From the NCBI GenBank assembly GCA_946965045.2, contig OX337232.1, positions 620,001 to 684,000 of the forward strand: DNA of 64,000 bases, written 5' to 3'. This DNA is from Epithemia pelagica (lineage: Eukaryota > Protista > Bacillariophyta). The first letter of the stretch is position 1, and every line of letters starts with the position of its first letter. Positions 437 to 53,446 of this stretch are shown here, in pieces. The notes below the pieces were generated by a model. That model saw only the letters and a list, made by a program, of their open reading frames with translations. It was not told the origin of the DNA and did no database searches. The position numbers were made by a program, and so were the translations under genes.

Positions 437-1940
437 ATGACTCGAAATATGGGAACGTGGATCATCTTGTTGATCCTTAGTGCTGTTAGTTCTGGTGTAT
501 CGGCCTGGGATGTCTCGGCAAAGTCCACGGCAGGACGCCGCCTCTTGAAGAACGCGCAAAAGGTCGAGTACAACGAATCCGGAGACTTGGTAGTTGCCAA
601 CAGAAGGCTAGAAGATCAACAACAAGCTGAGGATGATGATGATGACTCCTGGGTCGCCCACATGTCGTTGAAATTTGACGCCTGTTACAACACGGTCATT
701 CTTTCCGAAAATGGAGGCCAAAATGGACAAAGTCCCATTGTCAATCAAGGTGTCGTCACCTTTCGCCTGTGCCAATCCTACAACTGCGACAAATGTTCGG
801 AGGGTGGCATTTACGCCATTGATTTGGCTGAGTTTGTATCCGCCTACTCGGCTGCCAAGATGGAAGAAAACCAGTACACGTGCCAAAGTATGCTACAAAG
901 CTGTGGCTGCTACAACGCAGATGACGAAGAAACCTGTGCCTACAAATGTTGGCAAAAGAATGGCCTAGAATATTGCTTCTACGACGATAATTTCCAATTT
1001 GAAAACTATTTGGAATGTGCACGTAAGTACTGCTTGAGATCTTTTTGTGGCATGACGAACTAGCCCTCGTGGTTGGTCCAAACTAATGTCTCAATCTTGT
1101 GATATTTTATTTGTTCCTACAGAAATGGAAGTCAATAACAACCAGAACAACAATAATCAAAATGGCAACTACTATTACCAATGGCAAAACAAAAATCAGG
1201 AAAACGACCAAAATGGTGCCTACAGTGGCTATCAAATCTATCCCAACTGGAATGGAAACTACTACGTGGGTCCCTACTGTGCCGCCGATGGAGAGTCCGT
1301 CTACTTGGGTGTCTTTTACGATGAAGGATGTTCCGTCAGTGCCGGAGACGGTGCCTATGCCACCATGAATTACGCCCAACTGCCCTATTCGGCTTCTTCC
1401 AAGGATGGTCCCATGGTCCCCTTGGATACTTGCATGTACTGTACCCAACGACAACAAAATGGTGGTGGCAACAACAACAACAACAATCGAGACAATAATA
1501 ATAATCAAGCTCAAGTATCCGAATTTTGTGCCGCCGTCTATGAAGATGCCGCCAAGTGCAACGCTAATGACAGCCAGGGCTGCCATTACATTAAAAAGTT
1601 TTTGCCCAAATTGAATGGTATTCGCTACGTTCGGTACATTGGTGCGCCCAACAACAACGTTCCCTTGGTTTTTGCCATTTTGTTTCTCTTGTCAACCGTT
1701 ACCTTTGGTGGATATTCCTTTTATCTCTATGCCAAGATTAAACGCGGAGAAGTGGAAATTTACGATGAAGATGACGAAGAGCCGCAAGCACAACCAAACG
1801 ACGGTACACCGGTCGTGACGGGACAAGAAAATACATTTGTCCCTCCCACACCCGTCGAACCGGCAGCCCCAGAGGAAGCTGCTGCAGATGTGCCTCCATC
1901 CGAATCACCACAAGAAACTACTGAAGCCAAGATTGTCTAA
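437..1940 (+). CDS. Silicanin-1-like type I membrane protein, copy A (2 exons; intron 1023-1122)
   Basis: Signal peptide (MGTWIILLILSAVSSGVSA), RRL motifs, Cys-rich luminal domain with N/Q-rich inserts, TM helix (VPLVFAILFLLSTVTFGGYSFYLY) and acidic tail. The GTAAGT...TACAG intron joins ORFs 248..1063 and 1086..1940 in frame (ECAQMEV). Architecture matches the diatom silicanin family from recall. Confidence 0.75.
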
Positions 1941-3048
1941 AATGCTCCCACAAGAAGCGGACAGTCCTCGGCGTTCTCGCAGAGTATGGGATGGTGGTGA
2001 TTGGATGATTTTATCTGATGATGTAAACATGATGGATGAATATTATGATGACAAGTGGAGCGATTTTTCTATGTGATGCTGTTGTACCCTTACATAAACT
2101 AGTTTTATGAGTTAGTAGTAGTAGAACTTTTCCTGTTACCAGAATGCAATGGTGCGTTTGTAAGTCGATACCACACAACAACACGTACCTGTAGAAGAAC
2201 TTACAACAAGACAGGCGGGAACGTTCTGTGACAGTGGTACGAGAATAAATTCTCTCTTATCCGTCAAGAGCCTGGAGATAGCATTCACTGCCATGGTTGA
2301 TCAAATAATGTCGATTGTCGGTACAGTTTACTCCAAGGTACAAGTGTCTCTAGGAAGAAGGTACTGGTAGAACTACGGTAATCCTCCTACTCCCTCTAGA
2401 CTACTCCGAGGATCTGGTTTCGGGAACGGGTAGCTCTTACTCATGTCTGGCGTGACTGCACTCATTCCCGGTTGTGTCGTGTCTGGATACGCTCGCTGAA
2501 TTGGCATAGTCGTTGGATGATCGCTCGCTTCATCGGATCCTTGGGCGACGCAGCACGTGCCAGCGTCATGCCAAGTACGTAATCCCTGACGGTACAAATG
2601 AATATATTCATAGAAACAATAAATTTGAAAACTAATTTCGCGAGGGGGTTTGTATTTCATTCCATATCCCCTAAATTTAGAAAATTGGCGAGGGCTTTGG
2701 CCGGCGTGAGGAGGGTTGGATGCAATAATTCCATCGCCCCACGAACGCCAACGCCGCTACGACGTGCGCTAAAGTTTCGAAAATTCTCTAATTGTTTGTC
2801 GATAGATCCGTTAGACATCTATGTATTTATCACGGCAATAGCACCACCCAATTTTTGACGGTCCGCCGAGCGGTTGAAGGACGTCCTAACGGATACCTCT
2901 TTAAGTATCTGTTGTTTGCCAACGGATGAGCCGAGCGCATTGGATTCAACGCAAAGGCCCTCTCGGTCAAGCCTCGTTGAGTATGCTCAAAACTTTTGGA
3001 TCACGGAATTTAGTGCATCATTGTCATCTTGTAGTCATCGGTTTCACC

Positions 3049-4399
3049 ATGTTGTGCCTTTCTATCATCGGTTTGGTCATGTCGACGGCGTCTGCCATAA
3101 GCATCAGCGCCAACTCTCCTGCTGGACAACGTTTGTTGAAGAAGTCCACCTTGGTTGAGGAAGGTCGTCGTTTGGAGAACAACAACAATGTCGAGAACGC
3201 CATTGCCGGGCTCAAGCTCCGTTACGTGGGTTGCCATAACCTTCTCCAAATGGCCGAAGGTGGCGGCGGTGGTGAAGATGGCAGTCCGGTCGAAAACGGT
3301 GCCGTCATCACCTTTGAACTTGCCAGTTCCTGCAGCGGTGGCTACTACGGAAAGTACGCTTGCCCCATGCAAGACTTTATGGACTCGTACACCGAATCCA
3401 TGTTGAACGAACGTGAATGGCGCTGTGAAAACTTCCGCGAAAACTACTGCGGCTACTGCGAAGGAAACGACAACAACAATGGAAACAACAACAACAACGG
3501 TAACTACAACGGTAACGGTTACTACTCCTGTGAACAGGAATGCTTCATGAACGGCTATGACCCTGACACTAACGAAAACATGGCCAGCTGCTACCAAGAA
3601 GAACAACAAGATGGACAAGAAGAATTCGAAATCCAACGTTATTTGGAATGTGCTGGTAAGTGTTCGGATCCTTGTGCTATGTGTGCTACCTCGGTTAATC
3701 TCTCACACTATATACTCGTTCTCAGAAATGGAACAGAACAACAATAACAACAACAACAACAATGGTGGAGGAAATAACAACAACTGGAACTGGGGCGATG
3801 ACAGTGCTCCTTACGGCTGGGATGGCCAATACCGTGTGGGTGCCTACTGTGCTGACGATGGCAAGTCCATCTACTTGGGTGTCTTTTACGATGATGGATG
3901 CAGCATGCGTGGATCCACCTCTCTCTACTCCAGTATGAACTATGGTGCCAGTCTTCCCTACTCCAATGAACCTATCATCCCTCTCAGCGCCTGCATTGAC
4001 TGTAACGACCCACAAGCAGAAGCCGAAAACAACAACAATGGCAACGGAAATAATAATAACAACAACAACAATGGAAACAACCAGCAGTGGAACAACATGG
4101 AACCCCGTGAATTCTGCATCCAATCGTACGAACAAGCGGCCAAGTGCGAGAAGAACGTCAACGGATCTCCCTTTTACTACCCCTACACCAGTGGATGTAA
4201 CTTTATCGACGACTACTTGCCCCACATTTCTTCCTCCTCCTTCATGTTCTCGGCTGGATCTGGCAGCAAGGCTTCTTTGATCTTTGCCTGGCTCTTTGGT
4301 ATCACCACCATCCTCTTTGGTGCCTACGCCTACTTTTTGTACCGCAAGATCAAGCGAGGTGGTGCTGGATTGGCCAGCCAAGAGGGTTCTTTGGCCTAA
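3049..4399 (+). CDS. Silicanin-1-like type I membrane protein, copy B (2 exons; intron 3656-3725)
   Basis: Signal peptide, RRL site (GRRLENNNN), Cys-rich and NG/N-rich luminal domain, TM helix and ~20-aa tail YRKIKRGGAGLASQEGSLA. The intron is at the same codon position and phase as in copy A. Both share YLECA and YC..DG.S.YLGVFYD.GCS blocks. Confidence 0.8.
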
Positions 4400-4866
4400 G
4401 TTCCTCAAGAACAATGAAGGAATGATTCAAAAAGTTTTGGGAAGACACTTTGCAGGTACCGATGCAATGTTGTTGAGATTAGGAACTGTTTCTCACGACT
4501 GCGACGATGACAAGGCCTGGAAGTGTTTTAAGTGGAGGATGAAGGGTGAAGCTGTATGTGTTGACTGCTCATCTATTTTAAAGAACAAAAAATGCATTAA
4601 TTAGGAAAAGCGAAATTTAAGCGACAAATGTGTTCAACAAGCAGTAGTAGTAGCTCCGATATAGATCGGGGGTTGTAGCTGACTTCGATGTCGCTAGACC
4701 ACCGTTTGGACAAGAAGAGCGTTCTACAATCATACAACGAGGAAGAAGTCAACCATTCGTATTCCAAATGTCTCCTTTTACAACTACTCTAGAGAACTGT
4801 GCGTGTTTTGCGCCACTCGAATCGTTACAAAAACCTGTCATCCGCCCACCTGAACGATCCATGGTC

Positions 4867-5988
4867 TTACACGGGCATTTTCTGCGGGGTAGCAAAACGT
4901 CAGGAACAATGCGTTAGATAGGAGCCTCTGCTTCGTGGAGACCCGGCACTAATGAACCACTCTCTGTCATGCGTAAACACCACACAACAACGACTCCCAA
5001 AGACTAAACAAGCCATTCCTTTGTCAACGTACCGTAAAGGTTTGTGTTTCCACCAACGAGATACCCTCGATGGCTTCCAACTTGGCCAAAACGTCGGCTT
5101 CGGGTTTAAATTCAGCTCCTTCCCAATCCCCAAACTTTTCGGCGTCCAAGGAGGTAATCACCTGGCAGTCATAACCATTACAACAACAACAACAAAATGG
5201 ATTATTCATTTGAGTGATTCTGTCCTTCGATCCATGTAACAACAACAATAACGACAATACTATCTCTTGCTGCATCCTGCAGTACAATCCCACATTTTGT
5301 TCAAGGTAAGGTTACTTTCAATCTCTAATACATCGTCGCACGATGTATTTGAAATTCAAATACATCGTCGTACGATGTATTAGATATTGAAAGTAACCTT
5401 ACCCTTAACAAGGGAAAGAATCCATCGGCTTTGGATCGGAAACTCCGATGGGACAATTTCTGCCTTCCTTTCGTGTCCGTGGATTCCAACAACGACGTAC
5501 CTTAAAGTCCAAGCCTGTGTGCGTATATGATCGGTTCACCATTTCATTCCAGACAGGATATCGAGAAATTCCATGCAGCAAACCAAGAACCAAACAATCG
5601 GTTGAGAAACAGACACCACTGCCGAATTCACAGCAACACACCCTGGTTCGCTCTCTCTCTCCTCTCGTTACGAACTTGTGCACTGGAGGACGACCCAATC
5701 CACAGTGTTTCCCCAATGTCACGAAAAACAAACAATCCCTGCCTCGAGTCTACACTTTATTGAAATCATGCCCAACACAACACTCGACTTACATCCTCCA
5801 CAGACAATGCGTTCGACCGACTTGACACCGTCGACGGCTTTGAGATCGGCCAAGACACTGTCCAAGATTTTTTGGGCTTCGACCAAACTGGCCTTGTCAT
5901 TGTCCGGACTCCATTTGCAACGCCATTCGCGAGCAACGGTATCAAATTCCACGCCCTCGGCAATGGTCACTCCCAAGGCCGACGACAT
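4867..5988 (-). CDS. Small conserved hypothetical protein (~117 aa), 4 exons: 5988-5793, 5514-5501, 5161-5033, 4881-4867
   Basis: Canonical GT-AG junctions splice into one frame: ...EGVEFDTVAREWRCKW...VERIVCGGCLDFKVITSLDAEKFGDWEGAEFKPE...ETQTFTKMPV*. The 5' end is uncertain; a signal-peptide-like exon MKLSVLLALIWSTVAS lies near 6250-6295. Confidence 0.75.
5303..5406. mobile_element. Near-perfect ~104-bp palindrome (MITE/foldback-like) inside an intron
   Basis: Left arm AAGGTAAGGTTACTTTCAATCTCTAATACATCGT... is the near reverse complement of ...ACGATGTATTAGATATTGAAAGTAACCTTACCCTT. Each arm also holds its own AATACATCGT-nnn-ACGATGTATT hairpin. Confidence 0.6.
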
Positions 5989-7580
5989 GGATCGGGGTTG
6001 AGGAGTCACACCGACAAAGGCCTATCGAATTCATACACATGTGTGTATGGGCGATTGCCATGCCCGTATGAAATCCAGAACGTACGACAGGAGCGGGGAA
6101 AGACAGAGAAAACGTGAGAAACAGCTTGTTGCCGACAAGTTTGGAGTCGTCCCAGTCGACAAGCATCGTTTTCGACAGTATAGATCCTTCCAAGAAAGGC
6201 GGCGGAGGAGACGGACGACAAGAGACAACCACACCGATACGTACCGAAGCGACTGTGGACCAGATAAGCGCCAAGAGAACCGAAAGCTTCATTGTAGTAG
6301 TAGTACTTGTTTGTTTTTGTGGTTGGTTTCCGAACAAAAGATCACCCACTTGCAATAGATGAGGTCGTTGCTATTGTTGTGTTTGACACCTCTTGGAGAC
6401 TTGTGGAAACAAAGATTCCAGCCGACTGACGTCATAGAAATCCTTTGTGCGACCAATAATTTGGGGGCATCAAGTGTTTCGACCCTGAAACATGTGCCCC
6501 CAGAGATAAGACGCCCCCTCCTTTGATAGAAGCAGCTGCTTTTCCAAAAAAAGTGTTTTGGATGCATCTTTTTTTTCTTTCTTTTTTTTATTCGCATCGT
6601 CGCTCGTTTTGTTTCGTTCCTTTGCACCTTGGGCCGTTGCGTTTGTTGCGGTTGGCCGTAGGAGAGAGACAGAGAGTTCTCTGGTACACTGTCGATCCTC
6701 ATCCTTGCTCCTTGCTTACCCTGGTGGAACAAGAACAAGAACAAGAACAAGAAGAACGACTGCGGCTGCAGTTTGATTTTCTATTATATCGCCTCTAAGA
6801 TACGGTGTCTCGCAATTGGCAACTCCACCTTTGGAGGAGTCCTTGCACCTCTTCTTCTGTTACCCATCTCGGCGCACAAACTCTTGACCACACGACAACG
6901 ACGACAACAACGACGACGATATGTCATTGAACTAAACGCTCGACAAAACCCATTACCACCACAGCCAAACCACTACCAACAACAACATCAAGTCTTGCTT
7001 TCTTTCTGTGGTAAGTTGCAGCTGAATCCGAACAAGCCAAACCACAAACTCGACCGCAACCCACAACGATACGATACAATACGAGTTTTTGGGTTGCGTG
7101 CCAATCAATCGACGCACCGTGCTATCGAGCAGTATTGGTCTACTCCTAGAAAGAGAATCATCTCTAGTGCAACGACAAGCAAAACAAGACACAACAACAA
7201 CAACAAAAGGCTGACAAGGCAAGAAAGAATTCTCTCAACTCTTTGGTGTCTTTTGGAAAGACCGGCTTGTTCTAACTGTGGAGACTGGGTGCTCTTTGGA
7301 TCGAACCAACCACCAACACTCCCTCTACTAATACAGAACTACTACTGCGAATAGAGTTCTATCCATCATCAGTCCACAACAACACCAACAGACGACAAAG
7401 TACTAGTATCCAAGGAAAAACAGCAATTTGTTTTTCCAAACAAACGTGTGTTTGGTAAAGACGTTTGTTCTATTGTATCCTATATCGAGTGGGCGACTTC
7501 CAAACAACAACAACAACGCAACGCTGTTCAACCAACAACCCCCAATACTACTTTACTACTCCAAAGATTGATTCTTCACC

Positions 7581-10500
7581 ATGACGACGTTACAGGCGAT
7601 TGGCTTTAATTTAATGGCTGGATGTTCCTTGGGTGCCTTGGCCATGGTGGGTTTTGGTTGGGCCGTTTCGCAACGACACGAATTTGTGGCACCGCGATGT
7701 GCCGCTCGACCCAAATCTGTCATTTATCCCGGTCCCATGCATCCTGGCTTGTATTATGACAATGGAAGTCGCCGGTTCAATCCGGTCGTGGACTTTATTC
7801 CCTGGACCCTCAGTTTAACCTACGATACGCTCCTCCGGGGAGTGCCGGGAACCGGCACTCGACATCGTGGACAAGCCGGAGCCTTGTTGCAAGTCAATTT
7901 GGATGCCATTGTCTTGTTGCGATTTCATGCCCTCTGTCTCAAATTGGCCGCCGTGGCCTCGATATTGTTTTTGTTGGTCTTGCTACCCATGTATGTCACC
8001 GGGGAGGAATGTCACTTGTACGATGGTACCTCTAGCAGTACGACCACTCTATGGTCCAATAGGACGACTGCCCAACAACAACAACAACAAGAGGATGAGG
8101 AAGATATTCCTCCGTGTTCGTACAATTTGACCAATTACGAACGTACCACCATTGCCAATGTACCGGGTGGTTTTGACGAAGGTACCGGTGTCCAAGTTCG
8201 AGATCAAAATCAATCCAGTTCCGTCCGATTGTATTTTGCCGTCTTTTGTTTTTGGATACTGCAAGGCTATTTGTTACACTTGTTGCGAAGAGAATGGATT
8301 GAATTGTTGGCGCTCCGACGTGTCTATTATTTGGAAGCCAATGTCTGGCAAGATCGACAAGATGAATTGGCCGAAATTCAACCTCATCAACAAGCACAAG
8401 AAGCCCAGCGACGCAAATTTCTCAAACGACAACGACGTCGACAGCAACGACGAGCCGCGCAAATGACGTCCGTCATTAATGCCAATTATCAAACGTCCTA
8501 CATGGAGCATCGACATGCCGCTCAAGATGAAGACGACGACGAGGAAGACGGCCTCCAGGACGACAACAATGACGAGGAAGAAGAAGCCTGGGAAGAGCAA
8601 TTTATAGAAGAGGAGCAAGAAGAAGATTATCAACGGTTAAATGTCCGAGACCCGTGGATTCCGCACCCGGAACATCGCAATACAGTTCCTAACGTTCAAT
8701 TGTACAGTGTCATGGTGGGTGGCTTGCCGGCATTGCCACCTCCTCCTGAACCAACCATGGCAACCACCGATCCTTCGGGGCGAAGTGGAACCGCAGGAGC
8801 TCCCGAACTGGCACACGAATTGTCAACCGTGGCCTTGGCTGCAGCTGCCGTAGCCGTGGGAGTATCCACTTCCAATGTGGGAACGACATCCAGTCAACCA
8901 CGACCAGCACCAGCACCCCGCATGCACACGAGTAGTATTCCCGAAGAACAGGAGGAACACGAAGTTCCCACAGCCTTGGTTTCTTCCACCTCGGGACCTG
9001 GCGGATCCTCGACACCTGTTTCCGTGAGCAATCATTCACAACCGCAACAGCATCAACCACAAGAAGCACCGCCCTTGCAACGTCGCTCGGTCGATTGGCA
9101 TTTGGCCTTGACGGCCGCCTTTTTCGATCATTGTGTCCCCAATCAACCCGGTTTTTCCAGTAGTGTAGCGGCCGTGACCGTCTTGCCTTCCTCCAAGGCC
9201 ATTGCCTCGGCCTGGCGGAAATGGTACAAGGCGGCCAGTAAACATCGACGATTGCGATTCTTACGACGCGCCATGGATTTGAAATTGCAACAAGAATATC
9301 AAGAACAACAAGCCGAATTAAAACGGCAACAAAGCATGTTTCGCAAGCAATCACAACAACAACTCAAGGAAGAGGAGGAGGAAGAAGAACCACCCCCGCC
9401 GCCACCTCCTCCTCCACCAAGAGCATCCTCACCACCGCCTCCCCCTCCACCACCTTTGCCCAACACGAATGGCCCACGCATGAAGGATGGTATGGATTAC
9501 GATCCAGTGCCACCCCCACCACCCGACAGTGAAGATGAAGTTAGCAGCAACAGTCACCCAGTCGGGAAAGAAGAAGAAGAAGAAGAAGAGGATAATGAAG
9601 AAGACACGCAAGAAGAAGAAGAAGAAGAAAACGAAGGCAAGCTCAGCCGGGTGGAACCATCCCGAGATGCCCAAGACATCGTCATTCCTCACGAACTAGG
9701 TGACTCGGTCGAGGTTGTGCCATCCAGTGGCGGTGAGGGTACCAATGACCTCACCGATGTGGACATGACACCAACTAAGGGCGGAGGAGCAATGAGTGAA
9801 CCACAAGGCCATCGATCACAAGAGGAAAAAGAAGAAGAGGAAATGGATTCTAACATGAGCAGTCTCCAAGCTAGCCAGGATGGAATGGAAGAGCCCGTCT
9901 CGGCCCTTCCACCTTTTGCTTCTTCTGCTGCCAAGGAACGGCGCACCCACAAACGCATCAAGAGTCGAAGACCGGGCGACACGCAATCGGTTCAGTCGAG
10001 TCCCAACTCAGCTGTCATCCCCCATGACACTCGAAGCACGCGATCTCATCAGTTTCGTGGTGGTGGACCAGGAGTCAGCCGAATCATGGTGCCTGGCACA
10101 CCCTCCACCATTCAGTTTAATTACGAAGAAGATGTGGTGGTACCGGAGCCCATTCTTTCCGAAAAGAGCCATGACGAAACCACCATCAAGACTCCCTATT
10201 CGGTCAAGGACAATATCACCACCGCCGGGGCCGGTTCGCAAACGACCGACGACGACCCAGATCATTCCAATAGCAACAACAACAATACGAACCGTCCCAG
10301 CCGTAGGAGCAGCAGTGTACGGGAGGACAGGGCCAACCGAAGAGACAGCAACAAAGGTCATGCATTTGGTCCAGAACAATATGCCATTTACTCACGTGAA
10401 TACGCCCAAGCAGCTGCACCCTGTTGTCCCAATGGATGTTGCGAAAATGCTATTTTGAATCACTGTACCTTGGAGGAATTAAAACTGCTGGAATTTGAGG

Positions 10501-15558: not shown

Positions 15559-16932
15559 CTACCTGCAGAGTTTTCGAAGAATTGACTTCTTCGTTGCAAC
15601 CAAATGCCTGGTCAAAGCGTTACCTTGAGGTATTTTCGCCTTCAAGTCGTCAAGCAAGGAGTCAAGGAACGGCTCAACGACTTGTCTTCGCGTTTGCTCA
15701 TCTTCAAATGTACCTCCTTTAGGCACTTGAAGGGCCGGGATTTCTGCCGGAGCCCATGATTGAATTTGACCAGAGAGTTTTTCCTGCTCGGCGACTTTTT
15801 GCTCGTCGTCAATCTCGTTTTCGCTATCGAATGGACCATGAACAGCATGAAGGAAGTTGCCATCATGAACTACTGTGTTTCGGTCTGGTGGCCAACTCAG
15901 CAGCGTGCTCGATGGGACTGTTTGGACAAAAAAGCTCAGTCCCGATAAAATTCTGCAAATGGCTTCAGTTCGAAGCTCTTGCGAGTAATGATTGCTGTTG
16001 TTCTTTCCACCAAAAAGATCCCGTTCCCAATGTACATTCCATTTTCGGCTATTGACGACGAGCAATTCATTAAGCACCTTCATCCCAACTTGGGACCAGC
16101 GATACTGAAGTCCCTCTTGGCCATTACTGATGCTCATGCCTTTTGAGATCAAAAGGGCAGTGAGTCCCTCCGCTTGCTTATAAATGCAAGTTTCGGCCAT
16201 TGACTGGAAAGTTGCAGGTGTCAAAGCAACACGTATGCCGTTGACGTTATTGGTGAGAACCGCTATAGATTTGTTCTGGGCCGTGACGTTATTGGTGAGA
16301 ACCGCAATATATTTGTTCTGGGCCGTGACGTTATTGGTGAGAACCGCAATATATTTGTTCTGGGCCGTGACGTTATTGGTGAGAACCGCAATAGAGTTGT
16401 TCTGGGCTTCCAGTTGAGCTTCGAACGACATCGCAATAGATTTGTTCTGGGCTTCCAGTTGAGCTTCGAACGACATCTTCAGAGCTTCGTAGTCTGCCTT
16501 CCGCGATTTTTCGTTCTCCATCTTCTGGGCTTCGAGCTTCGTAACGCTACTGTTGAGAGCTTGCTCGAGAGCCGCAATAGATTTAACGCTACTGTTGAGA
16601 GCTTGCTCGAGAGCCGCAATAGAATTGCGCAGAGCTTCGTTTTCAGTCTTCAACGACGTGTTCATCTCATCGAGTATCTGAGCCATTGTCTCGTAAAGCA
16701 CGGGGCGTTCGCAATTGCGAAGTGATTTGCAAGGTTCAATGTCGCTCGCATTCTTGTACATCAGTACGCTGCTTGACATGGCAAAAAGTGGTCGTGGTGA
16801 GGAGTGGAAGAACCTTGGCGATGTGAACGGTACGTTAGTTGAAGCCCATGGAGAATGCAGAGCAAAACAGGATGGAGCCAGAAGAGCAACCAAGGAAAGA
16901 AGAAAAGGCACAAGAAATGATGGAAGCTTCAT
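15559..16932 (-). CDS. Uncharacterised coiled-coil + helical-domain family, copy 1 (signal/plastid-like leader; RNTVVH motif)
   Basis: Intact ORF from MKLPSFLVPFLLSLVALLAPSCFA. The C-terminal domain (MAETCIYKQAEGLT...EAICRILSGLSFFVQTVPSS.LLSWPPDRNTVVHDG...LCR) is clearly homologous to 44757-45734 and 50501-51330. Confidence 0.8.
   Translation of the reverse strand: MKLPSFLVPFLLSLVALLAPSCFALHSPWASTNVPFTSPRFFHSSPRPLFAMSSSVLMYKNASDIEPCKSLRNCERPVLYETMAQILDEMNTSLKTENEALRNSIAALEQALNSSVKSIAALEQALNSSVTKLEAQKMENEKSRKADYEALKMSFEAQLEAQNKSIAMSFEAQLEAQNNSIAVLTNNVTAQNKYIAVLTNNVTAQNKYIAVLTNNVTAQNKSIAVLTNNVNGIRVALTPATFQSMAETCIYKQAEGLTALLISKGMSISNGQEGLQYRWSQVGMKVLNELLVVNSRKWNVHWERDLFGGKNNSNHYSQELRTEAICRILSGLSFFVQTVPSSTLLSWPPDRNTVVHDGNFLHAVHGPFDSENEIDDEQKVAEQEKLSGQIQSWAPAEIPALQVPKGGTFEDEQTRRQVVEPFLDSLLDDLKAKIPQGNALTRHLVATKKSILRKLCR
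16242..16623. repeat. Intragenic 42- and 45-bp tandem repeats encoding 14/15-aa coiled-coil units
   Basis: AQNK[SY]IAVLTNNVT ~x4, SFEAQLEAQN[KN]SIA x2 and SIAALEQALNSSV[KT] x2, all visible as nucleotide repeats. Confidence 0.9.
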
Positions 16933-17399
16933 GGCTTTGCTTTCGAACGGTGTAGCTACTTGCGGAAATCCCGCCAGAACAATTCTATCAAGAGTCAAGA
17001 GCCAAGGGATGAAGTTGTGAGTTGTGAGAGTTCTGTTGTGCGAGCATCGAGCATTCGACTTTCGACGACCCCGATGAATTTTCACGGTGAGCTGTTCTGC
17101 CGTAGGGACACTACTGGGACTGAGTAGTAGTATTACGTTGTATGTTGTACGTGTATGTTGTATGTTGTATGTGCAGTGTCACTGTGGACTATATTGTATG
17201 GTATGAGATGAAGACGGCCACACTCACACTCTACCCTCTACCTTGGACCTTGGCAGGAAAGAGAGCCTCCTAGTCTACTCTCTGTAGCTTGAAGAGTACG
17301 AGTATCCATTGGGATGTGCTCCTTGAGGCTTGAGGGAGGCGGAGCTACCGGTGATTTTACATTCACAGGAAATCGGGGAATGGTGCAAAGTAGCGCACT

Positions 17400-44756: not shown

Positions 44757-45734
44757 ATGTATTCTCGATTGGTATTGAAGAACGTGCCTTTGGCATCGCC
44801 AAGGTTTTGTCCTCCACCACGACCACTCCTTTCGCGGCAAAGCAGCCAAACCATGTTGTTCTCTTCTGCGTCCGAGAACGAGAGCGACTCTCTGGTCAAA
44901 CGTGAGCGCCCCAGTCTTTCAGAGAAATTCTCAAGTCTTTCAGAGAAACTGAATGAGATTAAGAAGTCCCAGCAAGATTTACGTGCTGAGATTACAAAGC
45001 AACAGGATGAGATTGCAAAGCTCCAGCAAAACCATACAAAGCTCCGAGAAGGGATCAATGGCCTTCGATGTGTTCTTGCGCCCGCAACTACCCAGGCCAT
45101 GGCCGAAACATGCATCTACAAGCAAGCGGAGGGACTCACTTCCCGTTTGATCTCACAAGGCATGGTTATCTGGAATGGCCAAGAAGGGCTTCAATATAGT
45201 TGGTCCCAAGTTGGGACGAAGGTGCTTGATGAACTTCTCTTGGCAAATGAGGACGACCAAGCATTGGAAATAAGTTGGGAACAGGAGCTTTTTGGTGGAA
45301 AGGATAATACTGCATTTCATACACAAGAGCTTCGAGTTGAAGCGATCTGTGCCATTTTATCCGGACTGACCTATTTTGTTAAAACAGTCCCATCGAGCAC
45401 ACTGCTGAGTTGGCCACGAGACCAAAACACTTTTTCGAATGATGGTGCCTATCTGAATGCGTTTCTCGGTTCAGTGGAGAGCAAAAGTGAGATCCAAGAT
45501 ACAAAGAAAGTCGCTGGTGTAATTCAGTCGTGGGTGCCCTCCGAAATCCCTTTCCAAAAGGTCCCCGAAGAAGGAGGCGACTACAACAACGAGCAAACGC
45601 GAAGAGAAATCGTTGGGCCGTTTCTTGAATCCTTGGTTAACGAGCTGAAGAAAAAATTACCAGAAGACAACATTGTCATCAGTCGTTTGGATACCACCAA
45701 GCAGTCTGTTCTTACAGAACTCTGCAGGAATTAA
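44757..45734 (+). CDS. Coiled-coil + helical-domain family, copy 2 (mitochondrial-type leader; motif degenerate QNTFSN)
   Basis: R/S/P/L-rich, acid-free N-terminus MYSRLVLKNVPLASPRF..., a coiled coil, then the same domain as 15559-16932. Confidence 0.8.
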   Translation: MYSRLVLKNVPLASPRFCPPPRPLLSRQSSQTMLFSSASENESDSLVKRERPSLSEKFSSLSEKLNEIKKSQQDLRAEITKQQDEIAKLQQNHTKLREGINGLRCVLAPATTQAMAETCIYKQAEGLTSRLISQGMVIWNGQEGLQYSWSQVGTKVLDELLLANEDDQALEISWEQELFGGKDNTAFHTQELRVEAICAILSGLTYFVKTVPSSTLLSWPRDQNTFSNDGAYLNAFLGSVESKSEIQDTKKVAGVIQSWVPSEIPFQKVPEEGGDYNNEQTRREIVGPFLESLVNELKKKLPEDNIVISRLDTTKQSVLTELCRN

Positions 45735-46761: not shown

Positions 46762-49700
46762 ATGCCGTCGTCCTGCCATCGAATGCTCTTGTGGTCGACC
46801 CTTCTTCTTCCCGGTTTTGTCCAGTCCTCCTTTGTTGACGTACCACCACAATTGTCTTCCACAACAAGCAGCAACAACAACAACAACAGCAACACTCTCA
46901 ACCAGGATGCTCGCTCCTTGACCACCTCGTCGCAAGTTTGCGACGGAGGGTTGATCTGTCTGTAAGTGTCTTTTGAATGGTTTATTTGCGAACATACGAC
47001 AAACTCTGCAGTGCAGCAGCACGTTCTTGAGTGATTCTGCGGTTGTGGTTCTTGTTACCGAATCGTTCCTCTCAATTGTTGGTTTTGTTTGTCCTTTTTG
47101 TTGCGCTGCTCTTGTTCTTGTTGTTGCTCTTTGTTTCATCTTGGTTGACATGCTCTTTTCGTATTGCTGTTTTTAGCAACAATGGCCATTGCGCGGAGGG
47201 TCACAATTATCACCAAGACGGTGCCGTGTGCGATTGTACGACGGCCGTGCAAATTTTGGGGACCGGTCAAGGCGAAGAGGGCTATGAACAATGGGTGGGT
47301 CGATCGTGTCAAATTCGGGTTACCAACAATGATTATTGCAACAACAACAATCAATTTTCCTATTGTGTCAATGGTGGCACGTGTCGTAACCAGGCCAAGG
47401 ACTTTGCCGATCGTCCCTGCAAGTGTTTGGATGGCTTTTCCGGACGGCATTGCGAATACGATCGTAGCGCGGGTGGACCCGACCCCTCGGCATGTTCCCT
47501 CACCTGCAATGGCAAGGGGACTTGTCATTTTGGCTTTAATCCTCATGCCGATCAAGGGGCCAACAAGGCCTTGCCATCGACCAACAGTCATGATTTCATG
47601 TATTGTATTTGTGAGGATGGACACGCGGGAACCAATTGCGAATTTGATTTTACCGAATGCCGTGATCCGCAGGGACAAGTGTCCAAACACTTTTGCTATC
47701 ATGGTGCCACGTGTTTGCCAGGCACGGGCATTTGCCAATGTCAAAATGATCAAGGAGTCCAATGTACGTAGTAGTTGCGATTGAATTGCTCAACCATGTG
47801 GTTTCTCACGTGTCACTCACTGCCTTTGCTTCGTATTGTCATTTTGACAATTGTTAAATAAACCATTGATTGCCCTCTGTATTATATCTCTATACAGTTG
47901 CCGGTGATTACTGTCAATTCAAGGAATCGGATACCTGTGCGACTCCTATTGTGATTGATGCTGCCGCGGCAGCTCTTCAATTTGACGAAGCCAACAAGTT
48001 GACCTACGATCCGGCCGTCCAAGTCAATGACCCACCGCCCTTTTGCGTCAATGGAGGAGCTTGCTTCCAGGTGGAAACTACCAATGATTACTATTGCTTG
48101 TGTGCCGCCGATGACCATGGTGGACTGTGGACCGGTCCGCAATGTACCATTCCCTACATGGCCGCCCATCTCACACAAGCACCGACTGCGGCTGGAACCG
48201 ATACGTGGGGACCCACTATTGATGGCAGTTGGACAACGTGGCCCAGTTCCGATGGACCCAGTTCCGAGGCTCCCACCGATGCACCCATTCCCACGGTGCC
48301 CTTTGTCCAATGTGGAAATTTGCATTGTCTGTACGTATTTCTTTATGTGAAGCGAGGGTTTAGAGACGGTTTTTCTTTATCGTAAGGGCAATTGTGGTAC
48401 GGGTCCCATTCTTACTGTCTCCCCTTCTCTCTCCCGTTATTTTGTCTCTTTTGGCGGCGTGATCTGTTTGGTCCTTGTCTCATGTGTGTCGTACAGAAAT
48501 GGTGGTTTTTGTGCCTCGGGTCATAATTACCAGTCCAAACATGCCGTATGCGACTGTCGAACCGCCATTAAGGATGAGGGTGAAGACAGATTTACGGCAT
48601 ATGCCGGACGAGAATGTGAAATTGAAGTCTTGGATCCGCAATTTTGTCCGGGCACCGAGCAGACTGAATTTTGCATCAATGGTGGCACTTGTCGAGGAAA
48701 TGCCAATAACTTTGATCAAAAACCCTGCACTTGTCCCAATGGTTTCAAAGGTCGTAATTGCGAAATCCCCGCCGAACATGCACCCGAGTCCTGTGGCCTC
48801 ACTTGTTCCAATAATGGGAGATGCGAACATGGGCTCAATCCCACCGAGAAAAAGGGTGCCAATGGCCTTTTGAATTTGGACAATGAAGGTTCTAGTAACT
48901 TTATGCATTGCATTTGTGACGAAGGCTTTGCGGGAATAAATTGCGAATATGAGGTTACCAAATGTGCCGGACGCCAACGATATTGCTTTCATGGATCCAC
49001 CTGTATCGATGTGGCCGGGGGACCGGATTTGGGCGGAGAACAAGTATGTGAATGCGATGGTGATGATGGCAAGAAATGTACGTACCTAACCAAAGCGGGC
49101 ATGATATATATCACGTGTGGAAGCATGTAGTCTTCTCGTCCAAAATCTAACCAATCTGTGGGCGGATCAATCGGGTTACACAGTGACAGGACCCTATTGT
49201 GAATTTGAAGCGACCGATTATTGCAATAATCCTGTCCTCATTGACGAGACCAATGCCGTGCAATCCTTTAGTCCAACAAAGCAATTGAATACTGATGAAG
49301 TATCGCCCTTTTGTGTCAATGATGGTATTTGTTACATGGTGGAATCCTTGAATCACTATTATTGTCAATGTGATGAAATTTTGTTTACCGGAAACCGATG
49401 CGAAACCCAAAAACAGTCGCTGCATTTGACTGCGGCTCCTACGGCCGCATGGACCGACACTTGGCCTCCCACTGTGGAAGCCAGTTTGACCGACATGCCC
49501 GTCGCACCCACTCGGCCTCCCACCACTCCACCCTATGCATTGCCTACCCCACCGACGACACCCACTCTTTTGTCCCAAAACAGTAGCACCGATGACGACA
49601 ACATATCAGGTGGGGGCAAATTTGGTATTGTCTTGGTGGTGGCCGTCGGTTTGGCGTGCATTGCCTTTGTCATGCTCTATTTCCGTCGTCGGGCGCGGTA

Positions 49701-49974
49701 CTTGAAACGCATGGTCTATCAAGATGGCGATCCGCATACCGGACCTGACAGCATTTTCCGTGCCGATGATAACAAACATTTGGATATCGCACCCTTTGAA
49801 GAAGAAGAACATGTTGTGGAACTGTCTGCCACTCGTAGTATGGACAGTGACGAAGTTCCAGGTGGAGACCAGGGCAAGTTTAACAACACAAGTGGTGGTG
49901 CACAAGCACCGGAGCAACCATCGCCTGAAAATCCTTCGGAGAACAAGGAAATGAGCCAAGTGGAGCTTGTGTAA
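46762..49974 (+). CDS. Multi-EGF type I membrane protein C (two modules, several introns)
   Basis: Signal peptide with RSL, the same module and introns as A and B, and TM helix KFGIVLVVAVGLACIAFVMLYF. Confidence 0.85.
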
Positions 49975-50500
49975 TTGTTGACATACCAGAAAAGTTTATA
50001 GATTTGCCGTACTAATAATATGAGAGATTGAACGAATGTTTTCTGTAAATTGGCAAACGAGAGTCCACAGAGAACGGAGTTACTAAGGTTGCATCAGAGT
50101 GTCTTAACATTGGACTTTTGAGTGCAGCAATTGCGTCCCTGCACATATTTGCAAGTGTAGAGCATCATGATTGAGTCCTCTGCTCTTGCGCCGCTTTCCG
50201 AGTTTCTGTCATTCCCCTAGCATCTACCAAAGAACCAAGTTGTGGACAACAGAGTTAAAGTCTTAAAGCCAACAGTCTAGAGGGATGAATGAGTCATGAT
50301 GTGCTCATACATCAATTCCATTGATGCAAAACAAATCAGTGGCTTGACGTCATATTCGCACCTTCAAGACTGGTCCGAAAGGGAAAAGTGGCCAATAAAC
50401 GAACAAAAGGCCAGTGTTCTTGTCCCCAAGTGAGAGCGTTTCACATGAATCTTCGGATTGACGAGCGACAAGACGACCACATGTCAGATATTATCAAGTC

Positions 50501-52963
50501 TCAATTCCTGCAGAGTTTTGTAAGAACAAACTGCTTTGTTGTCTGCAAACGATTGATACAAATGTCATGTCCCCGAAATTTCCCCACCAATTCGTTTACC
50601 AGGGAATCTAGAAAAGGCTCAACCATTTGCCTTCGTGTGTTTTCCGTTTCATAACTACCACCATTCGGGACCTGAAGAGCGGGGAGTTTTGGAGGCACCC
50701 ACGATTGAATCTGACCGACGACTTTCTGAACGTCGTCAATCTCATTTTTGCTCTCATATGGACCATGAAGAGCATGAAGGAAGTTGCCATCATGAACTAC
50801 TATATTTCGCGCTGGTGGCCAATTCAGCAGCACGCTCGATGGGACTGTTTTGACAAAAAAGCTCAGTCCCGATAAAATGGCACAGATCGCTTCAGTTCGA
50901 TGTTCTTGAGTTTGCAATGCAGCATCCATTTTACCCAAAAGCATCCCTCTCCAACGTTTGTTCTGAGCTCGTTTACCTTGGATAAGTTCATCAAGCACCT
51001 GCATCCCAACTTTGGACCATAGATACTGCAGGCCTTCTTGGTCAATGCTGATTTCCTCGCTGATTTCCTTGTCTTGCGAGATGAGGCGGAAAGTGAGTTC
51101 CTCCACTTGTTTATATACACAAGTTTCGGCCATGGCAAAGGTTGTTGCAGGTTCCAAAGCCGATCTTATACCGTTCAATTCTTGCTGGCGCTTCTTATCA
51201 TTTTCTTGGAGTTTCGTAATCTGACGGGCCTGAGCTTCTTGATTCTCTCGCAGAGCTTTGTTGTCCGTCCGGAGAGCTTTCATCTCATTGGACAGAAAGT
51301 CCATTTTCTTGGAGAGGTCAAAGGCTTCGCGGGGATCCGGTTTGTCGGCACCCCACAAGGTGGCAGCCGTTTCGTTGGGTTGGACCGGACCGACATTTTC
51401 TATACACAAACACGTCCAAAGACAAACACCATGGTGAGAGAGTGAGGAGAGAAGTCTGGTTCTCCATGGTCCGTGCCACACATAAAGAGGACTTCTTCTA
51501 CTACTAGAACACGTACCATCCAAGAGAGAAAAGGAGGGAAGCAATTGTGTGGCATCGTAGGGTTTCCAGGCCACGGCATCCCCATCGGCACTGCATTTCA
51601 AGGCGCGGAGCCAGGTAAAGGTGACGAGGGCACCCGAGGGATCGCACACGTACGTGCCTTCGCCGACAATGGCCGTTTGCAAACAAATGCCGGCATAGCC
51701 CCCCTGTCCCAATTTGATGCGGGCATGGGGCGCCAAGGCCACATCAATTGTGGTACGATTGCCCAAGACAATGCCCTTGTTGGAAATTTGCGTCCGCAAG
51801 TCTTCACTAAAGTGCGAATGAAAGGGCGGTTCTCGCGGTGTAGTACTGTTGTTACTTGTGGCTCCTCCTTCGCCGGCGGTCCCTTCACCTCCTCCTTCCG
51901 TATTGGTTCGTCGATTGCCTCCATTGGTGCGTCGATTGTTGTTGCCGCCGCCGGGTCCACCGCGTGAGGAACGCCCCCGTCCTCGTCCCCCATTCTTGGT
52001 ATCTGTTGGGGCCGTGCCTCCTTCGGGTTCGGCGGCCGCCGCGGCCGCATCGTCAGTGGCGTCACCCTCACCCGACGTTGGTCGATTGCGTCGTGGTTGA
52101 CGAGGCGGCGGCACAATGGGACTTCCATCCCGATTGGTCACATTGACCGCCTTGAGACGACCGGAATCGGCTTCTTTTTCCACATCAAATTTCACTTCGG
52201 AATCGCCCTGGAAACAATGAGCGAACGAACCAAACAAAAAACACAGAGGTGAGTACTTCTAGCCTGGAGAAAGCACAGTGTTGCTGTTGCTGTTTCATGG
52301 GGCATCACAGAACGACACAATCCACGAACGACGCCACACAATTTACAATCGAGCCATGGTCAACACGAAACCAAGCAGGCCGTTGCATCGAGCATAATTT
52401 AACGGTACTGCTTCCAGAAACCAAAGAAATTGTAGTTTCTTGGTCGCTTCCAACTTGATAGGCAGATATATTTCTTCCTTATTCCATTACGAAGATTTCT
52501 TTTTTTCTCCTTTCCCCATTGCTTCATTCATCCACACACATGAGCAATTTGGCAGGTCTTGATTTGTCGCTTGTCGTCGAAACGATTTGGAAGGTACAAA
52601 AACCATGTTCCTTGGTATCTTTCTTTGATTCGTTCTTGACAAATTATACAGTCTCTTGCCTTGGCCGACGAACTGCGTTCCGGAATGGTTCTCACGCTCC
52701 CAGGATCAACGACACACTCAAAGACATTGACTCTTCTCTCTTGCGCGCGAGACAAATACACACACACTACAACAAACACTACTCACCGCCAAGGTTCGAA
52801 ATTGTCCATTGGTGACAATGCCCGTTTGATGGACAAAAATTTCTTCCGTCAAGGTCGAATTCACCGGTGTCAAGAATCCAAAGCCTTTGCGATTGGAAAA
52901 CCACTTGACCGTCCCTTCGACACCCGTCATGTGAATCGTATTAGTATTGTTGGAATCGGTCAT
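50501..52963 (-). CDS. Cold-shock-domain/RGG protein fused in frame to family copy 3 (RNIVVH motif); introns 52786-52208 and 51516-51400
   Basis: GTVKWFSNRKGFGFL (RNP1) and IFVHQTGI (RNP2). GT-AG splicing continues into GDSEVKFDVE...AVNVT and an RG/GG-rich linker. No stop occurs before the coiled coil and the MAETCVYKQ...LCRN domain. Confidence 0.75.
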
Positions 52964-53108
52964 GATTGCAAAAAATGACTAAAAATGACTACCAACCAAA
53001 AATCCAAAACAATGTAGATTGAGGAACAAGGGTGCCGGTAGAGACGAGACTGGAGCAAACAAGAAGTAAGACAACAGGAACAAGAGAGAGGAACCAAAAC
53101 TTGTGTTG

Positions 53109-53141
<33 letters not shown>

Positions 53142-53446
53142 ACAAACGACTCACTTCTTGGAAGAACGCCACCAGAAGGAAAAAAAGATCGTTTGCCGAA
53201 GAAAAGGTGTGCGGGGAAAGCAGTCCCGGTTCTGGCCCCGAACTCCACAGAGGACGACCTATCTGCGACCATTCAATGGTTTACGAACGTCCGCTACCCC
53301 TTCCTACCGGCAGGCATAGGCATAGGTATCGTTCCATCTGCCGTGTGAGACCGCAATCTCTGTGTCATCCACCCAATATCATGGAATGAACAACGCCGTT
53401 CTAGCAGGGGCTCTATGAGTATTATGTACAAATGTCTATGGAACGA

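Follow-up and report, generated by a model that had tools for sequence, protein, structure and literature searches.

A probable young chimeric gene of the diatom Epithemia pelagica, in which a duplicated cold-shock protein gene is joined in frame to a member of an unannotated diatom family

The window analysed here is a 64,000-nucleotide stretch of Epithemia pelagica DNA, positions 620001-684000 of contig 5 in a genome assembly of 60.5 Mb and 23 contigs. On its minus strand, from 52963 to 50501, lies a gene of three exons that once spliced gives an open frame of 588 codons. The encoded protein consists, in order, of a cold-shock domain (CSD), an RGG linker, a globular domain, a coiled coil and a 224-residue family domain, and is a truncated member of a diatom CSD-RGG-globular orthogroup joined to a 5′-truncated member of an unnamed diatom family. 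We argue below that this chimera is very probably a young gene made by segmental duplication, real and transcribed.

The gene model was queried exon by exon, the sole long query being the natural open frame of 578 residues at 50504-52237, in which intron 2 is read through without a stop. Exon 1 alone matched the Pfam CSD family PF00313 (E 3.3e-11; 43.3 bits, cut-off 27; profile positions 2-41 of 66) and carries both CSD nucleic-acid-binding motifs, RNP1 (KGFGFL) and RNP2 (IFVHQ). The remainder of the CSD lies in exon 2 and aligns to the ortholog P0002, whose entire CSD scores E 3.2e-17; over the CSD C-terminus and the RGG region, this first part of exon 2 aligns to the orthologs P0005 and P0014 as well as to P0002. 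The globular domain that follows has 50 homologs (E 1e-138 to 8e-18) and matched no family in Pfam. Upon alignment by eye the orthogroup pattern PPFH...GQGGYAG...WG.DKPDP.EAF was found in the chimera. An earlier reading of the locus from sequence alone (the sequence-only reading) had described two GT-AG introns and, running without a stop, a CSD, an RG/GG linker, a globular domain, a coiled coil and a domain with an RNIVVH motif, and our reading and Pfam agree with that architecture (Table 1).

Table 1 Features of the chimeric gene. Positions are those of the window; X2 is an RNA-like sequencing run described in the text.
Feature	Position	Strand	Basis or remarks
5′ untranslated region (UTR) / transcript start region	52964..53043	-	X2 depth drop; contig record 16 ends at 53043; inside the segments aligned to C6a and C6b
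Exon 1: start codon, then the first two thirds of the CSD	52787..52963	-	59 codons; Pfam PF00313; begins MTDSNNTNTIHMTGVEGTVKWFSNRKGFGFL, then IFVHQ, TLA
Intron 1	52208..52786	-	GT..AG, 579 nt, phase 0; X2 joint 52206->52786
Exon 2, whole	51517..52207	-	translation, splice joints
Exon 2, first part: CSD end (GDSEVKFDVEKE...AVNVTN) and RG/GG-rich low-complexity linker	51836..52207	-	translation
Exon 2, second part: globular domain conserved in diatoms (REPPFHSHF...SFSLLD)	51517..51835	-	homologs; no Pfam family
Intron 2	51400..51516	-	GT..AG, 117 nt, phase 1; retention would keep the frame and add no stop; X2 joint 51399->51517
Exon 3, whole coding part	50504..51399	-	ENVGPVQPNETAATLWGADKPDPREAF joined to DLSKKMDFLSNEMKALR, on into family domain
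Exon 3, parental CSD-gene part: globular domain end (ENVGPVQPNETAATLWGADKPDPREAF)	51318..51399	-	82/82 nt same as C6a; motif kept in all orthologs
Chimeric junction, duplication breakpoint inside both coding sequences	51317..51318	-	reads ...PDPREAF then DLSKKMDFLSNEM
Family-gene part: remnant ..LSKK motif and coiled coil (DLSKKMDFLSNEMKALRTDNKALRENQEAQARQITKLQENDKKRQQEL)	51176..51317	-	weak coiled-coil Pfam matches only
Family domain, all-alpha, 224 residues, unannotated pennate-diatom family	50504..51175	-	genome copies, profile relatives, AlphaFold2 (AF2) model
RNIVVH hallmark motif (R123..H128 of domain), intact	50792..50809	-	sequence
Stop codon TGA	50501..50503	-	sequence

The sequence-only reading held that the family domain had replaced the native C-terminus, and that diatom cold-shock proteins end soon after the WG..DP motif. 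The replacement was confirmed and that end point was not. A paralog on contig 6, C6a (670063-671962), continues as PDPREAFEANGFQMRRVVLTRPPNSHNHRFRRGGGG, and beyond the equivalent of the breakpoint it reads EANGFQMRRVVLTRPPNSHNHRFRRGGGGRGGGGRRSNSNTEGAAGGQ and then a stop. The same tail (EANGFQMRRVVLTRPPN and an RGG tail) follows PDPREAF in seven orthologs: P0002 from Epithemia clementina, P0008 and P0014 from Entomoneis paludosa, the MMETSP transcript P0005, the Logan transcript P0006, P0012 and P0024. The segment that the orthologs have in common is EANGFQMRR(V/I)VLTRPPN, then the RGG tail, and they extend about 45-60 residues beyond WG..DP instead of ending after DPREA. Given that the orthologs and C6a carry the tail segment, the native C-terminus is 48 residues longer than that reading had it. 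In the chimera the C-terminal EANGFQMRRVVLTRPP segment and RGG tail are gone, replaced from 51317 on, and 272 other residues stand in their place. These orthologs do not have the fusion, and no other protein of 318-1011 residues among 5.8 billion proteins was found to join CSD and family parts. On these comparisons the fusion event is lineage-specific, with paralog C6a and the diatom orthologs keeping the native tail.

The CSD half has two more copies, C6a and C6b, both on contig 6. Window 51318-53219 is 94-95% identical to C6a (93.9% in one alignment), window 51754-53219 is 94.5% identical to C6b, and homology to positions 670063-671962 of contig 6 stops exactly at 51318. The duplicated block runs from window 51318 to at least 63431 (more than 12 kb) and matches contig 6 688806-700000 at about 90% identity; the CSD gene is more alike between copies (94-95%) than its upstream flank (about 90%). 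Synonymous divergence (dS) is 0.026 between C6a and C6b and 0.087-0.089 between either and the window copy, and the contig 6 copies are thus closer to each other. As C6a and the orthologs keep the tail and the homology ends at 51318, we infer that a duplication breakpoint swapped the native C-terminus for family sequence. On the other side of the junction, the paralogs of the family gene have N-terminal presequences of their own, then ERP(T/S)LSKK and the coiled coil, where the family part of the chimera begins DLSKK. Hence, the family half is 5′-truncated and has lost its own start and promoter. The methionine of MDFLSNEM, just past the junction, is not a native start.

In outline, a block of more than 12 kb that includes the promoter and first 316 codons of the conserved CSD-RGG-globular gene was duplicated between contigs 6 and 5, and the end of the copied block fell within the coding sequence of a resident member of the diatom-specific family. 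The break took away the conserved last 48 residues of the CSD protein together with the promoter, start codon and N-terminal presequence of the family gene, and the two halves fused in frame, with 48 native residues exchanged for 272 of the family gene.

The duplicated region has other rearrangements. Within the block, window 55541-57229 matches contig 6 693882-692222 in reverse orientation. The third copy of the CSD gene, C6b (contig 6 687745-690036; loci L014 and L039), is equivalent to window 51754-52963 and is broken at the equivalent of 51754, from where its frame passes without a stop into a 354-residue open reading frame (ORF) starting MGNTQASVQFEDG, to give an open frame of 522 residues. 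This ORF matched no Pfam family. Copies of 97-98% identity lie at contig 4 2117350-2118411 and contig 6 3568077-3569138, and about ten others are more distant. The ORF is perhaps part of a mobile element or of one amplified recently.

Constraint was assessed by stringing whole exon codons together by script and counting synonymous and non-synonymous differences; the resulting figures cover the CSD half, the family half being without a close comparator. Over 315 codons the chimera and C6a gave a dS of 0.087 and a non-synonymous divergence (dN) of 0.020 (dN/dS 0.23). The 132 codons of the globular domain hold six synonymous and no non-synonymous differences, and the amino-acid differences are all confined to the edges of the CSD and the low-complexity linker, suggesting that purifying selection continued on the CSD half. 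It is possible, though less likely than not, that the gene is a transcribed but functionless by-product, a tolerated accident of a duplication-prone region that is heading for decay. The parental CSD gene has a second broken copy in C6b, whose frame runs into a multicopy ORF, the chimera is without a strongly conserved segment of its globular domain, many family paralogs have lost the R/H motif, and with dS at about 0.09, chance could leave a frame of 272 codons open. This reading has to contend with a frame that is undisrupted in both halves, with the zero-to-six ratio of codon differences in the globular domain, with an intact RNIVVH hallmark motif and with an RNA depth (see below) of the same order as that of native paralogs.

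The second partner belongs to a family that word-based searches with the domain found only in the organism's own assembly. The genome has eight intact copies, six of them on contig 5, and the paralog loci are window 15559-17085 (minus strand) and 44757-45734 (plus strand), contig 5 699214, 706222 and 708508, contig 6 3784168 and contig 10 794207. An exhaustive profile search of 1.84 billion representatives returned 45 relatives at E<=0.001. The named ones (Seminavis robusta CAB9514326.1, an 'expressed unknown protein'; Nitzschia sp. RCC80 MMETSP0014; and KAL3917200.1 from a Bacillariaceae metagenome-assembled genome) had profile E values of 1e-12 to 1e-4, the remainder being short metatranscriptome contigs. 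Typical members have 270-340 residues, with a Lys-rich or presequence-like N-terminus, a coiled coil and then the domain, and matched neither the CSD nor any other Pfam domain. The paralogs and distant relatives keep a leader of their own before the coiled coil; in the chimera the CSD protein stands in its place.

Across 37 distant relatives the best-conserved positions of the domain are H128 (100%), R123 and G130 (95% each), P9 (92%) and E17 (89%); the N of the motif is kept in 78%. These positions lie within the family motifs P-A-T..E-T-A.Y, in helix 1, and R-N-x-x-x-H-[ND]-G. The chimera has the coiled coil and a helical domain of about 200 residues as expected of the family, and retains both R and H of the motif. 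Of the other 11 copies from the organism in alignment A1, 7 have lost one or the other (replaced by Q or N). An AF2 model computed from 49 sequences had eight to ten helices, with a predicted local distance difference test score (pLDDT) of 83.9 and a predicted template modelling score of 0.86; a first prediction from 12 close paralogs (pLDDT 43.5) had been discarded. The conserved Glu, Arg and His suggest a catalytic or ligand-binding site, and the coiled-coil family domain of the chimera probably oligomerises. Such a protein would tether this domain to a single-strand RNA-binding module, and would do so in the compartment and under the promoter of a cold-shock protein, not where the presequence-bearing paralogs go.

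The paralogs differ among themselves. Their leaders vary, one being signal-peptide-like (MKLPSFLVPFLLSLVALLAPSCFALHSP...) and others Arg-rich and presequence-like, as does the number of coiled-coil repeats, and family fragments with stops occur at contig 10 790390-792866 and contig 16 812367-827691. Two distant paralogs of about 375 residues and 27-28% identity (contig 4 3347297-3347746 and contig 8 354784-355230; loci L035 and L036), which start MDRNSSKKRPFEH and have a coiled coil and ARNVVVHNG (ARNVVVQNG in one), link the local cluster to the wider diatom family.

The sequence-only reading had taken the gene for an RNA-binding protein fused to a putative RNase of the HEPN type, possibly stress-activated. 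The fusion to a CSD/RGG protein is real, and the HEPN RNase was not borne out by fold or profile searches. The HEPN superfamily is marked by the motif Rx4-6H and in Pfam belongs to the clan KNTase_C, with families such as DUF4145 and HEPN_RiboL-PSP. A functional RNA-targeting nuclease, in which the family domain would be a divergent HEPN RNase dimerised by its coiled coil and guided by the CSD-RGG module, could explain why RNIVVH fits Rx4-6H with the usual polar residue after R, why R and H are the best-conserved residues of the distant relatives along with a Glu in helix 1, and why the motif is kept in the chimera when so many copies have lost it. The domain is moreover all-alpha, and in all members a coiled coil precedes it. 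Language-model features in the ESM Atlas also placed DUF4145 and RiboL-PSP-HEPN clusters among its neighbours at scores of 0.87-0.90. This hint is weak: the recognition value of that query lay below the reliable range, and a second family member had no HEPN neighbour there.

Against this identity, scans of 12 or 35 family members with Pfam and PADLOC gave no HEPN even at E<=10, the HEPN Pfam models PF13643 and PF18735 run on the genome found nothing, and profile searches of the Protein Data Bank (PDB) with the family domain returned chance rows only. With the family model as query, Foldseek against the PDB gave nothing at E<=0.001 and no HEPN, and an Atlas shape search stayed below a template modelling score of 0.4, with no HEPN relative. 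VIA-align against 48,161 chains reached a best Z of 5.3, to sensor-globin-like bundles, with no HEPN among the best 50 matches; these sensor-globin-like rows (3pmc, 3zta, 2bnl, 7b0u and 2w31; Z 3.7-5.3) lie below the stated noise level for helical proteins and are a weak lead only. The model puts the motif in a loop (118-129) ahead of an eight-residue helix (130-137), with H-[ND]-G following, where HEPN proteins have a long motif helix. The predicted fold differs from the HEPN pattern of an up-down bundle of four helices in which the motif opens a long helix. We consider a HEPN-type RNase an unlikely identity for the domain. The chimera should not be filed as HEPN, and an RNase function for it is speculative. 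Slightly less likely again is that the RNxxxH[ND]G domain represents a new and highly divergent fold, either a nuclease or an RNA-modifying one, with a Glu/Arg/His triad, which in this species was recently wired to a cold-shock module to give a natural effector guided to RNA by a protein, with paralogs in organelles or the nucleus.

Evidence on transcription came from four public sequencing runs of one study (X1-X4), none of them on record as RNA, which were compared with window 50400-53100 as contigs built from 31-mers; a contig was taken to bridge the junction if it extended 31 nt past it. X1, X3 and X4 cover introns and exons alike and are therefore DNA-like. X2 contained both introns as skipped joints with CT..AC ends on the plus strand. 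Its depth was 1,300-9,700 in exons, about 320 in intron 1 and zero in intron 2 (bin 51401-51491), and the intron 2 joint had a depth of 3081. The intron 1 joint occurred in the chimera form (C at 52206; depth 954) and in the contig 6 form (1575). From the splicing and the intron depth we judge X2 to be RNA, in which case both introns called by the sequence-only reading are removed from the message. Toward the 5′ end the depth fell from 358.6 (52948-53038) to 28.9 (53039-53100). Record 11 of X2 (51606-51748, depth 2151) bears letters of the chimera copy at 51623, 51662 and 51701, and record 12 (51974-52123, depth 1319) bears nine letters unique to that copy. Hence, it is the chimera copy's own 5′ half that is transcribed and spliced.

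The 3′ (family) half was expressed at the same order of depth: X2 record 10 (50772-51346) had a depth of 2343 and record 9, which covers the 3′ end to 50400 and beyond, of 1236, so that RNA sequence continues without a gap from the 3′ UTR through the family domain and past the junction, as far as the k-mers allow. Further splice joints were not reported in X2 over 50400-53100. Given that transcripts from the promoter of the chimera copy meet neither a stop nor an alternative splice nor a native 3′ end ahead of the family terminator, one fused mRNA very likely covers both halves, and the chimera is presumably translated from the CSD start.

It is improbable that the locus makes two separate messages, a truncated or non-stop CSD RNA and a family-domain RNA from a new internal promoter that starts at the ATG of MDFLSNEM (51304-51302). 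That ATG is in frame and lies 14 nt past the junction, and the contigs can neither phase across the 82 identical nucleotides at the end of the CSD part nor show transcript starts. However, the native 5′ end of the family gene is gone (the paralogs begin 60-170 codons earlier), and the RNA contig 50772-51346 extends at least 42 nt upstream of the ATG at steady depth. Exon 2 of the chimera is present at similar depth, transcripts from it have no place to end before the 3′ end of the family gene, and no other joint was reported in X2.

Several points weigh against a single, translated and functional fusion gene. X2 is not on record as RNA. The 82 of 82 nucleotides that the chimera copy and C6a have in common at 51318-51399 are longer than the 31-mers, so that no single X2 record ties a diagnostic exon 2 letter to the family domain, and record 10 reaches 29 nt past the junction, below the bridging rule of 31 nt. 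As contigs cannot show where transcripts start, an additional internal start for MDFLSNEM is possible. The constraint test counts few substitutions, which are not assignable to one branch. Finally, the lost EANGFQMRRVVLTRPP segment is highly conserved, and the globular domain may therefore be damaged in the chimera.

The junction was itself seen in reads. Record 2 of X1 (50772-51416), a contig of the DNA type, spans it without mismatch, extending 546 nt to one side and 99 nt to the other, and X2, X3 and X4 contigs extend to 51346-51347. X3 and X4 also have a loose end exactly at 51318, the letters of which match contig 6 670033-670062 with one mismatch; both branches of the graph at 51318 were thus observed, each matching one assembled copy. 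As the X1 contig crosses it without mismatch, the junction is not an assembly artefact: a misjoin absent from the organism, for which one could cite only that the junction coincides with the edge of a 94-95% repeat, a typical misjoin site, is scarcely credible. The ENA contig ERZ21939226:ctg1340l was not counted as support, because at 100% identity to the window over 7.7 kb it is not independent. In X2 a loose end at 51754 carries the C6b junction letters.

Beyond the two ends of the gene, a CAG/CAA microsatellite of the polyglutamine-coding type occupies window 53103-53140, just upstream of the transcript start. Near it, in X4, 7 nt are inserted at 53063 and a contig has a loose end at 53090, and the length of the microsatellite appears to differ between copies or reads. 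Downstream lies a convergent ORF of 285 residues (window 49117-49974, plus strand), which combines an EGF-like, Cys-rich stretch with a Pro/Thr-rich region and a transmembrane segment. The X2 contig over the 3′ end of the chimera (1,136 nt) extends about 735 nt below 50400 into this neighbouring gene, so that the 3′ ends of the two transcripts may overlap.

As a young product of segmental duplication, the chimera would be a datable gene birth in a diatom, one that comes with its intact parent, a breakpoint known to the base, a truncated recipient and evidence of expression. To our knowledge such births are well documented in animals and plants and rarely in stramenopiles. A literature search turned up no relevant work on diatom chimeras with HEPN or cold-shock parts. 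The locus also exposes a pennate-diatom family with Glu and R-N-x-x-x-H-[ND]-G as its only strongly conserved residues, which in this genome forms a cluster that has expanded and is partly decaying. If functional, the chimera would be a natural experiment in retargeting the family domain to the RNA bound by a cold-shock module.

Compared with the diatom CSD-RGG-globular proteins (Epithemia clementina ACA910_004723 and Entomoneis paludosa A0A7S2VCA4), the chimera retains CSD, RGG linker and globular domain as far as WGADKPDPREAF, with 70% identity to E. clementina over the aligned 56% of the query and 96% to its own paralog, and has 272 unrelated residues where they have EANGFQMRRVVLTRPPN and the RGG tail. 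With the unannotated pennate-diatom family it has in common the coiled coil followed by the domain and the P-A-T..E-T-A.Y and R-N-x-x-x-H-[ND]-G motifs; typical members differ in having a leader of their own and no CSD. Its likeness to HEPN RNases consists of an all-alpha domain, a dominant R-N-x-x-x-H motif and an adjacent oligomerising element, and it differs from them in having neither a profile nor a structure match, and in about 190-220 residues and 8-10 predicted helices as against a four-helix core, with the motif modelled in a loop. The textbook young chimeric genes made by duplication and fusion are jingwei and Sdic of Drosophila. As in those cases, a duplicated 5′ part with its promoter is joined in frame to another gene, the parent is intact elsewhere and the new gene is expressed. 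The chimera works like these classic duplication-fusion genes and is a new instance in a diatom, with the differences that the duplication was segmental and at the DNA level, with introns kept and no retroposition, and that both parents were truncated within coding sequence.

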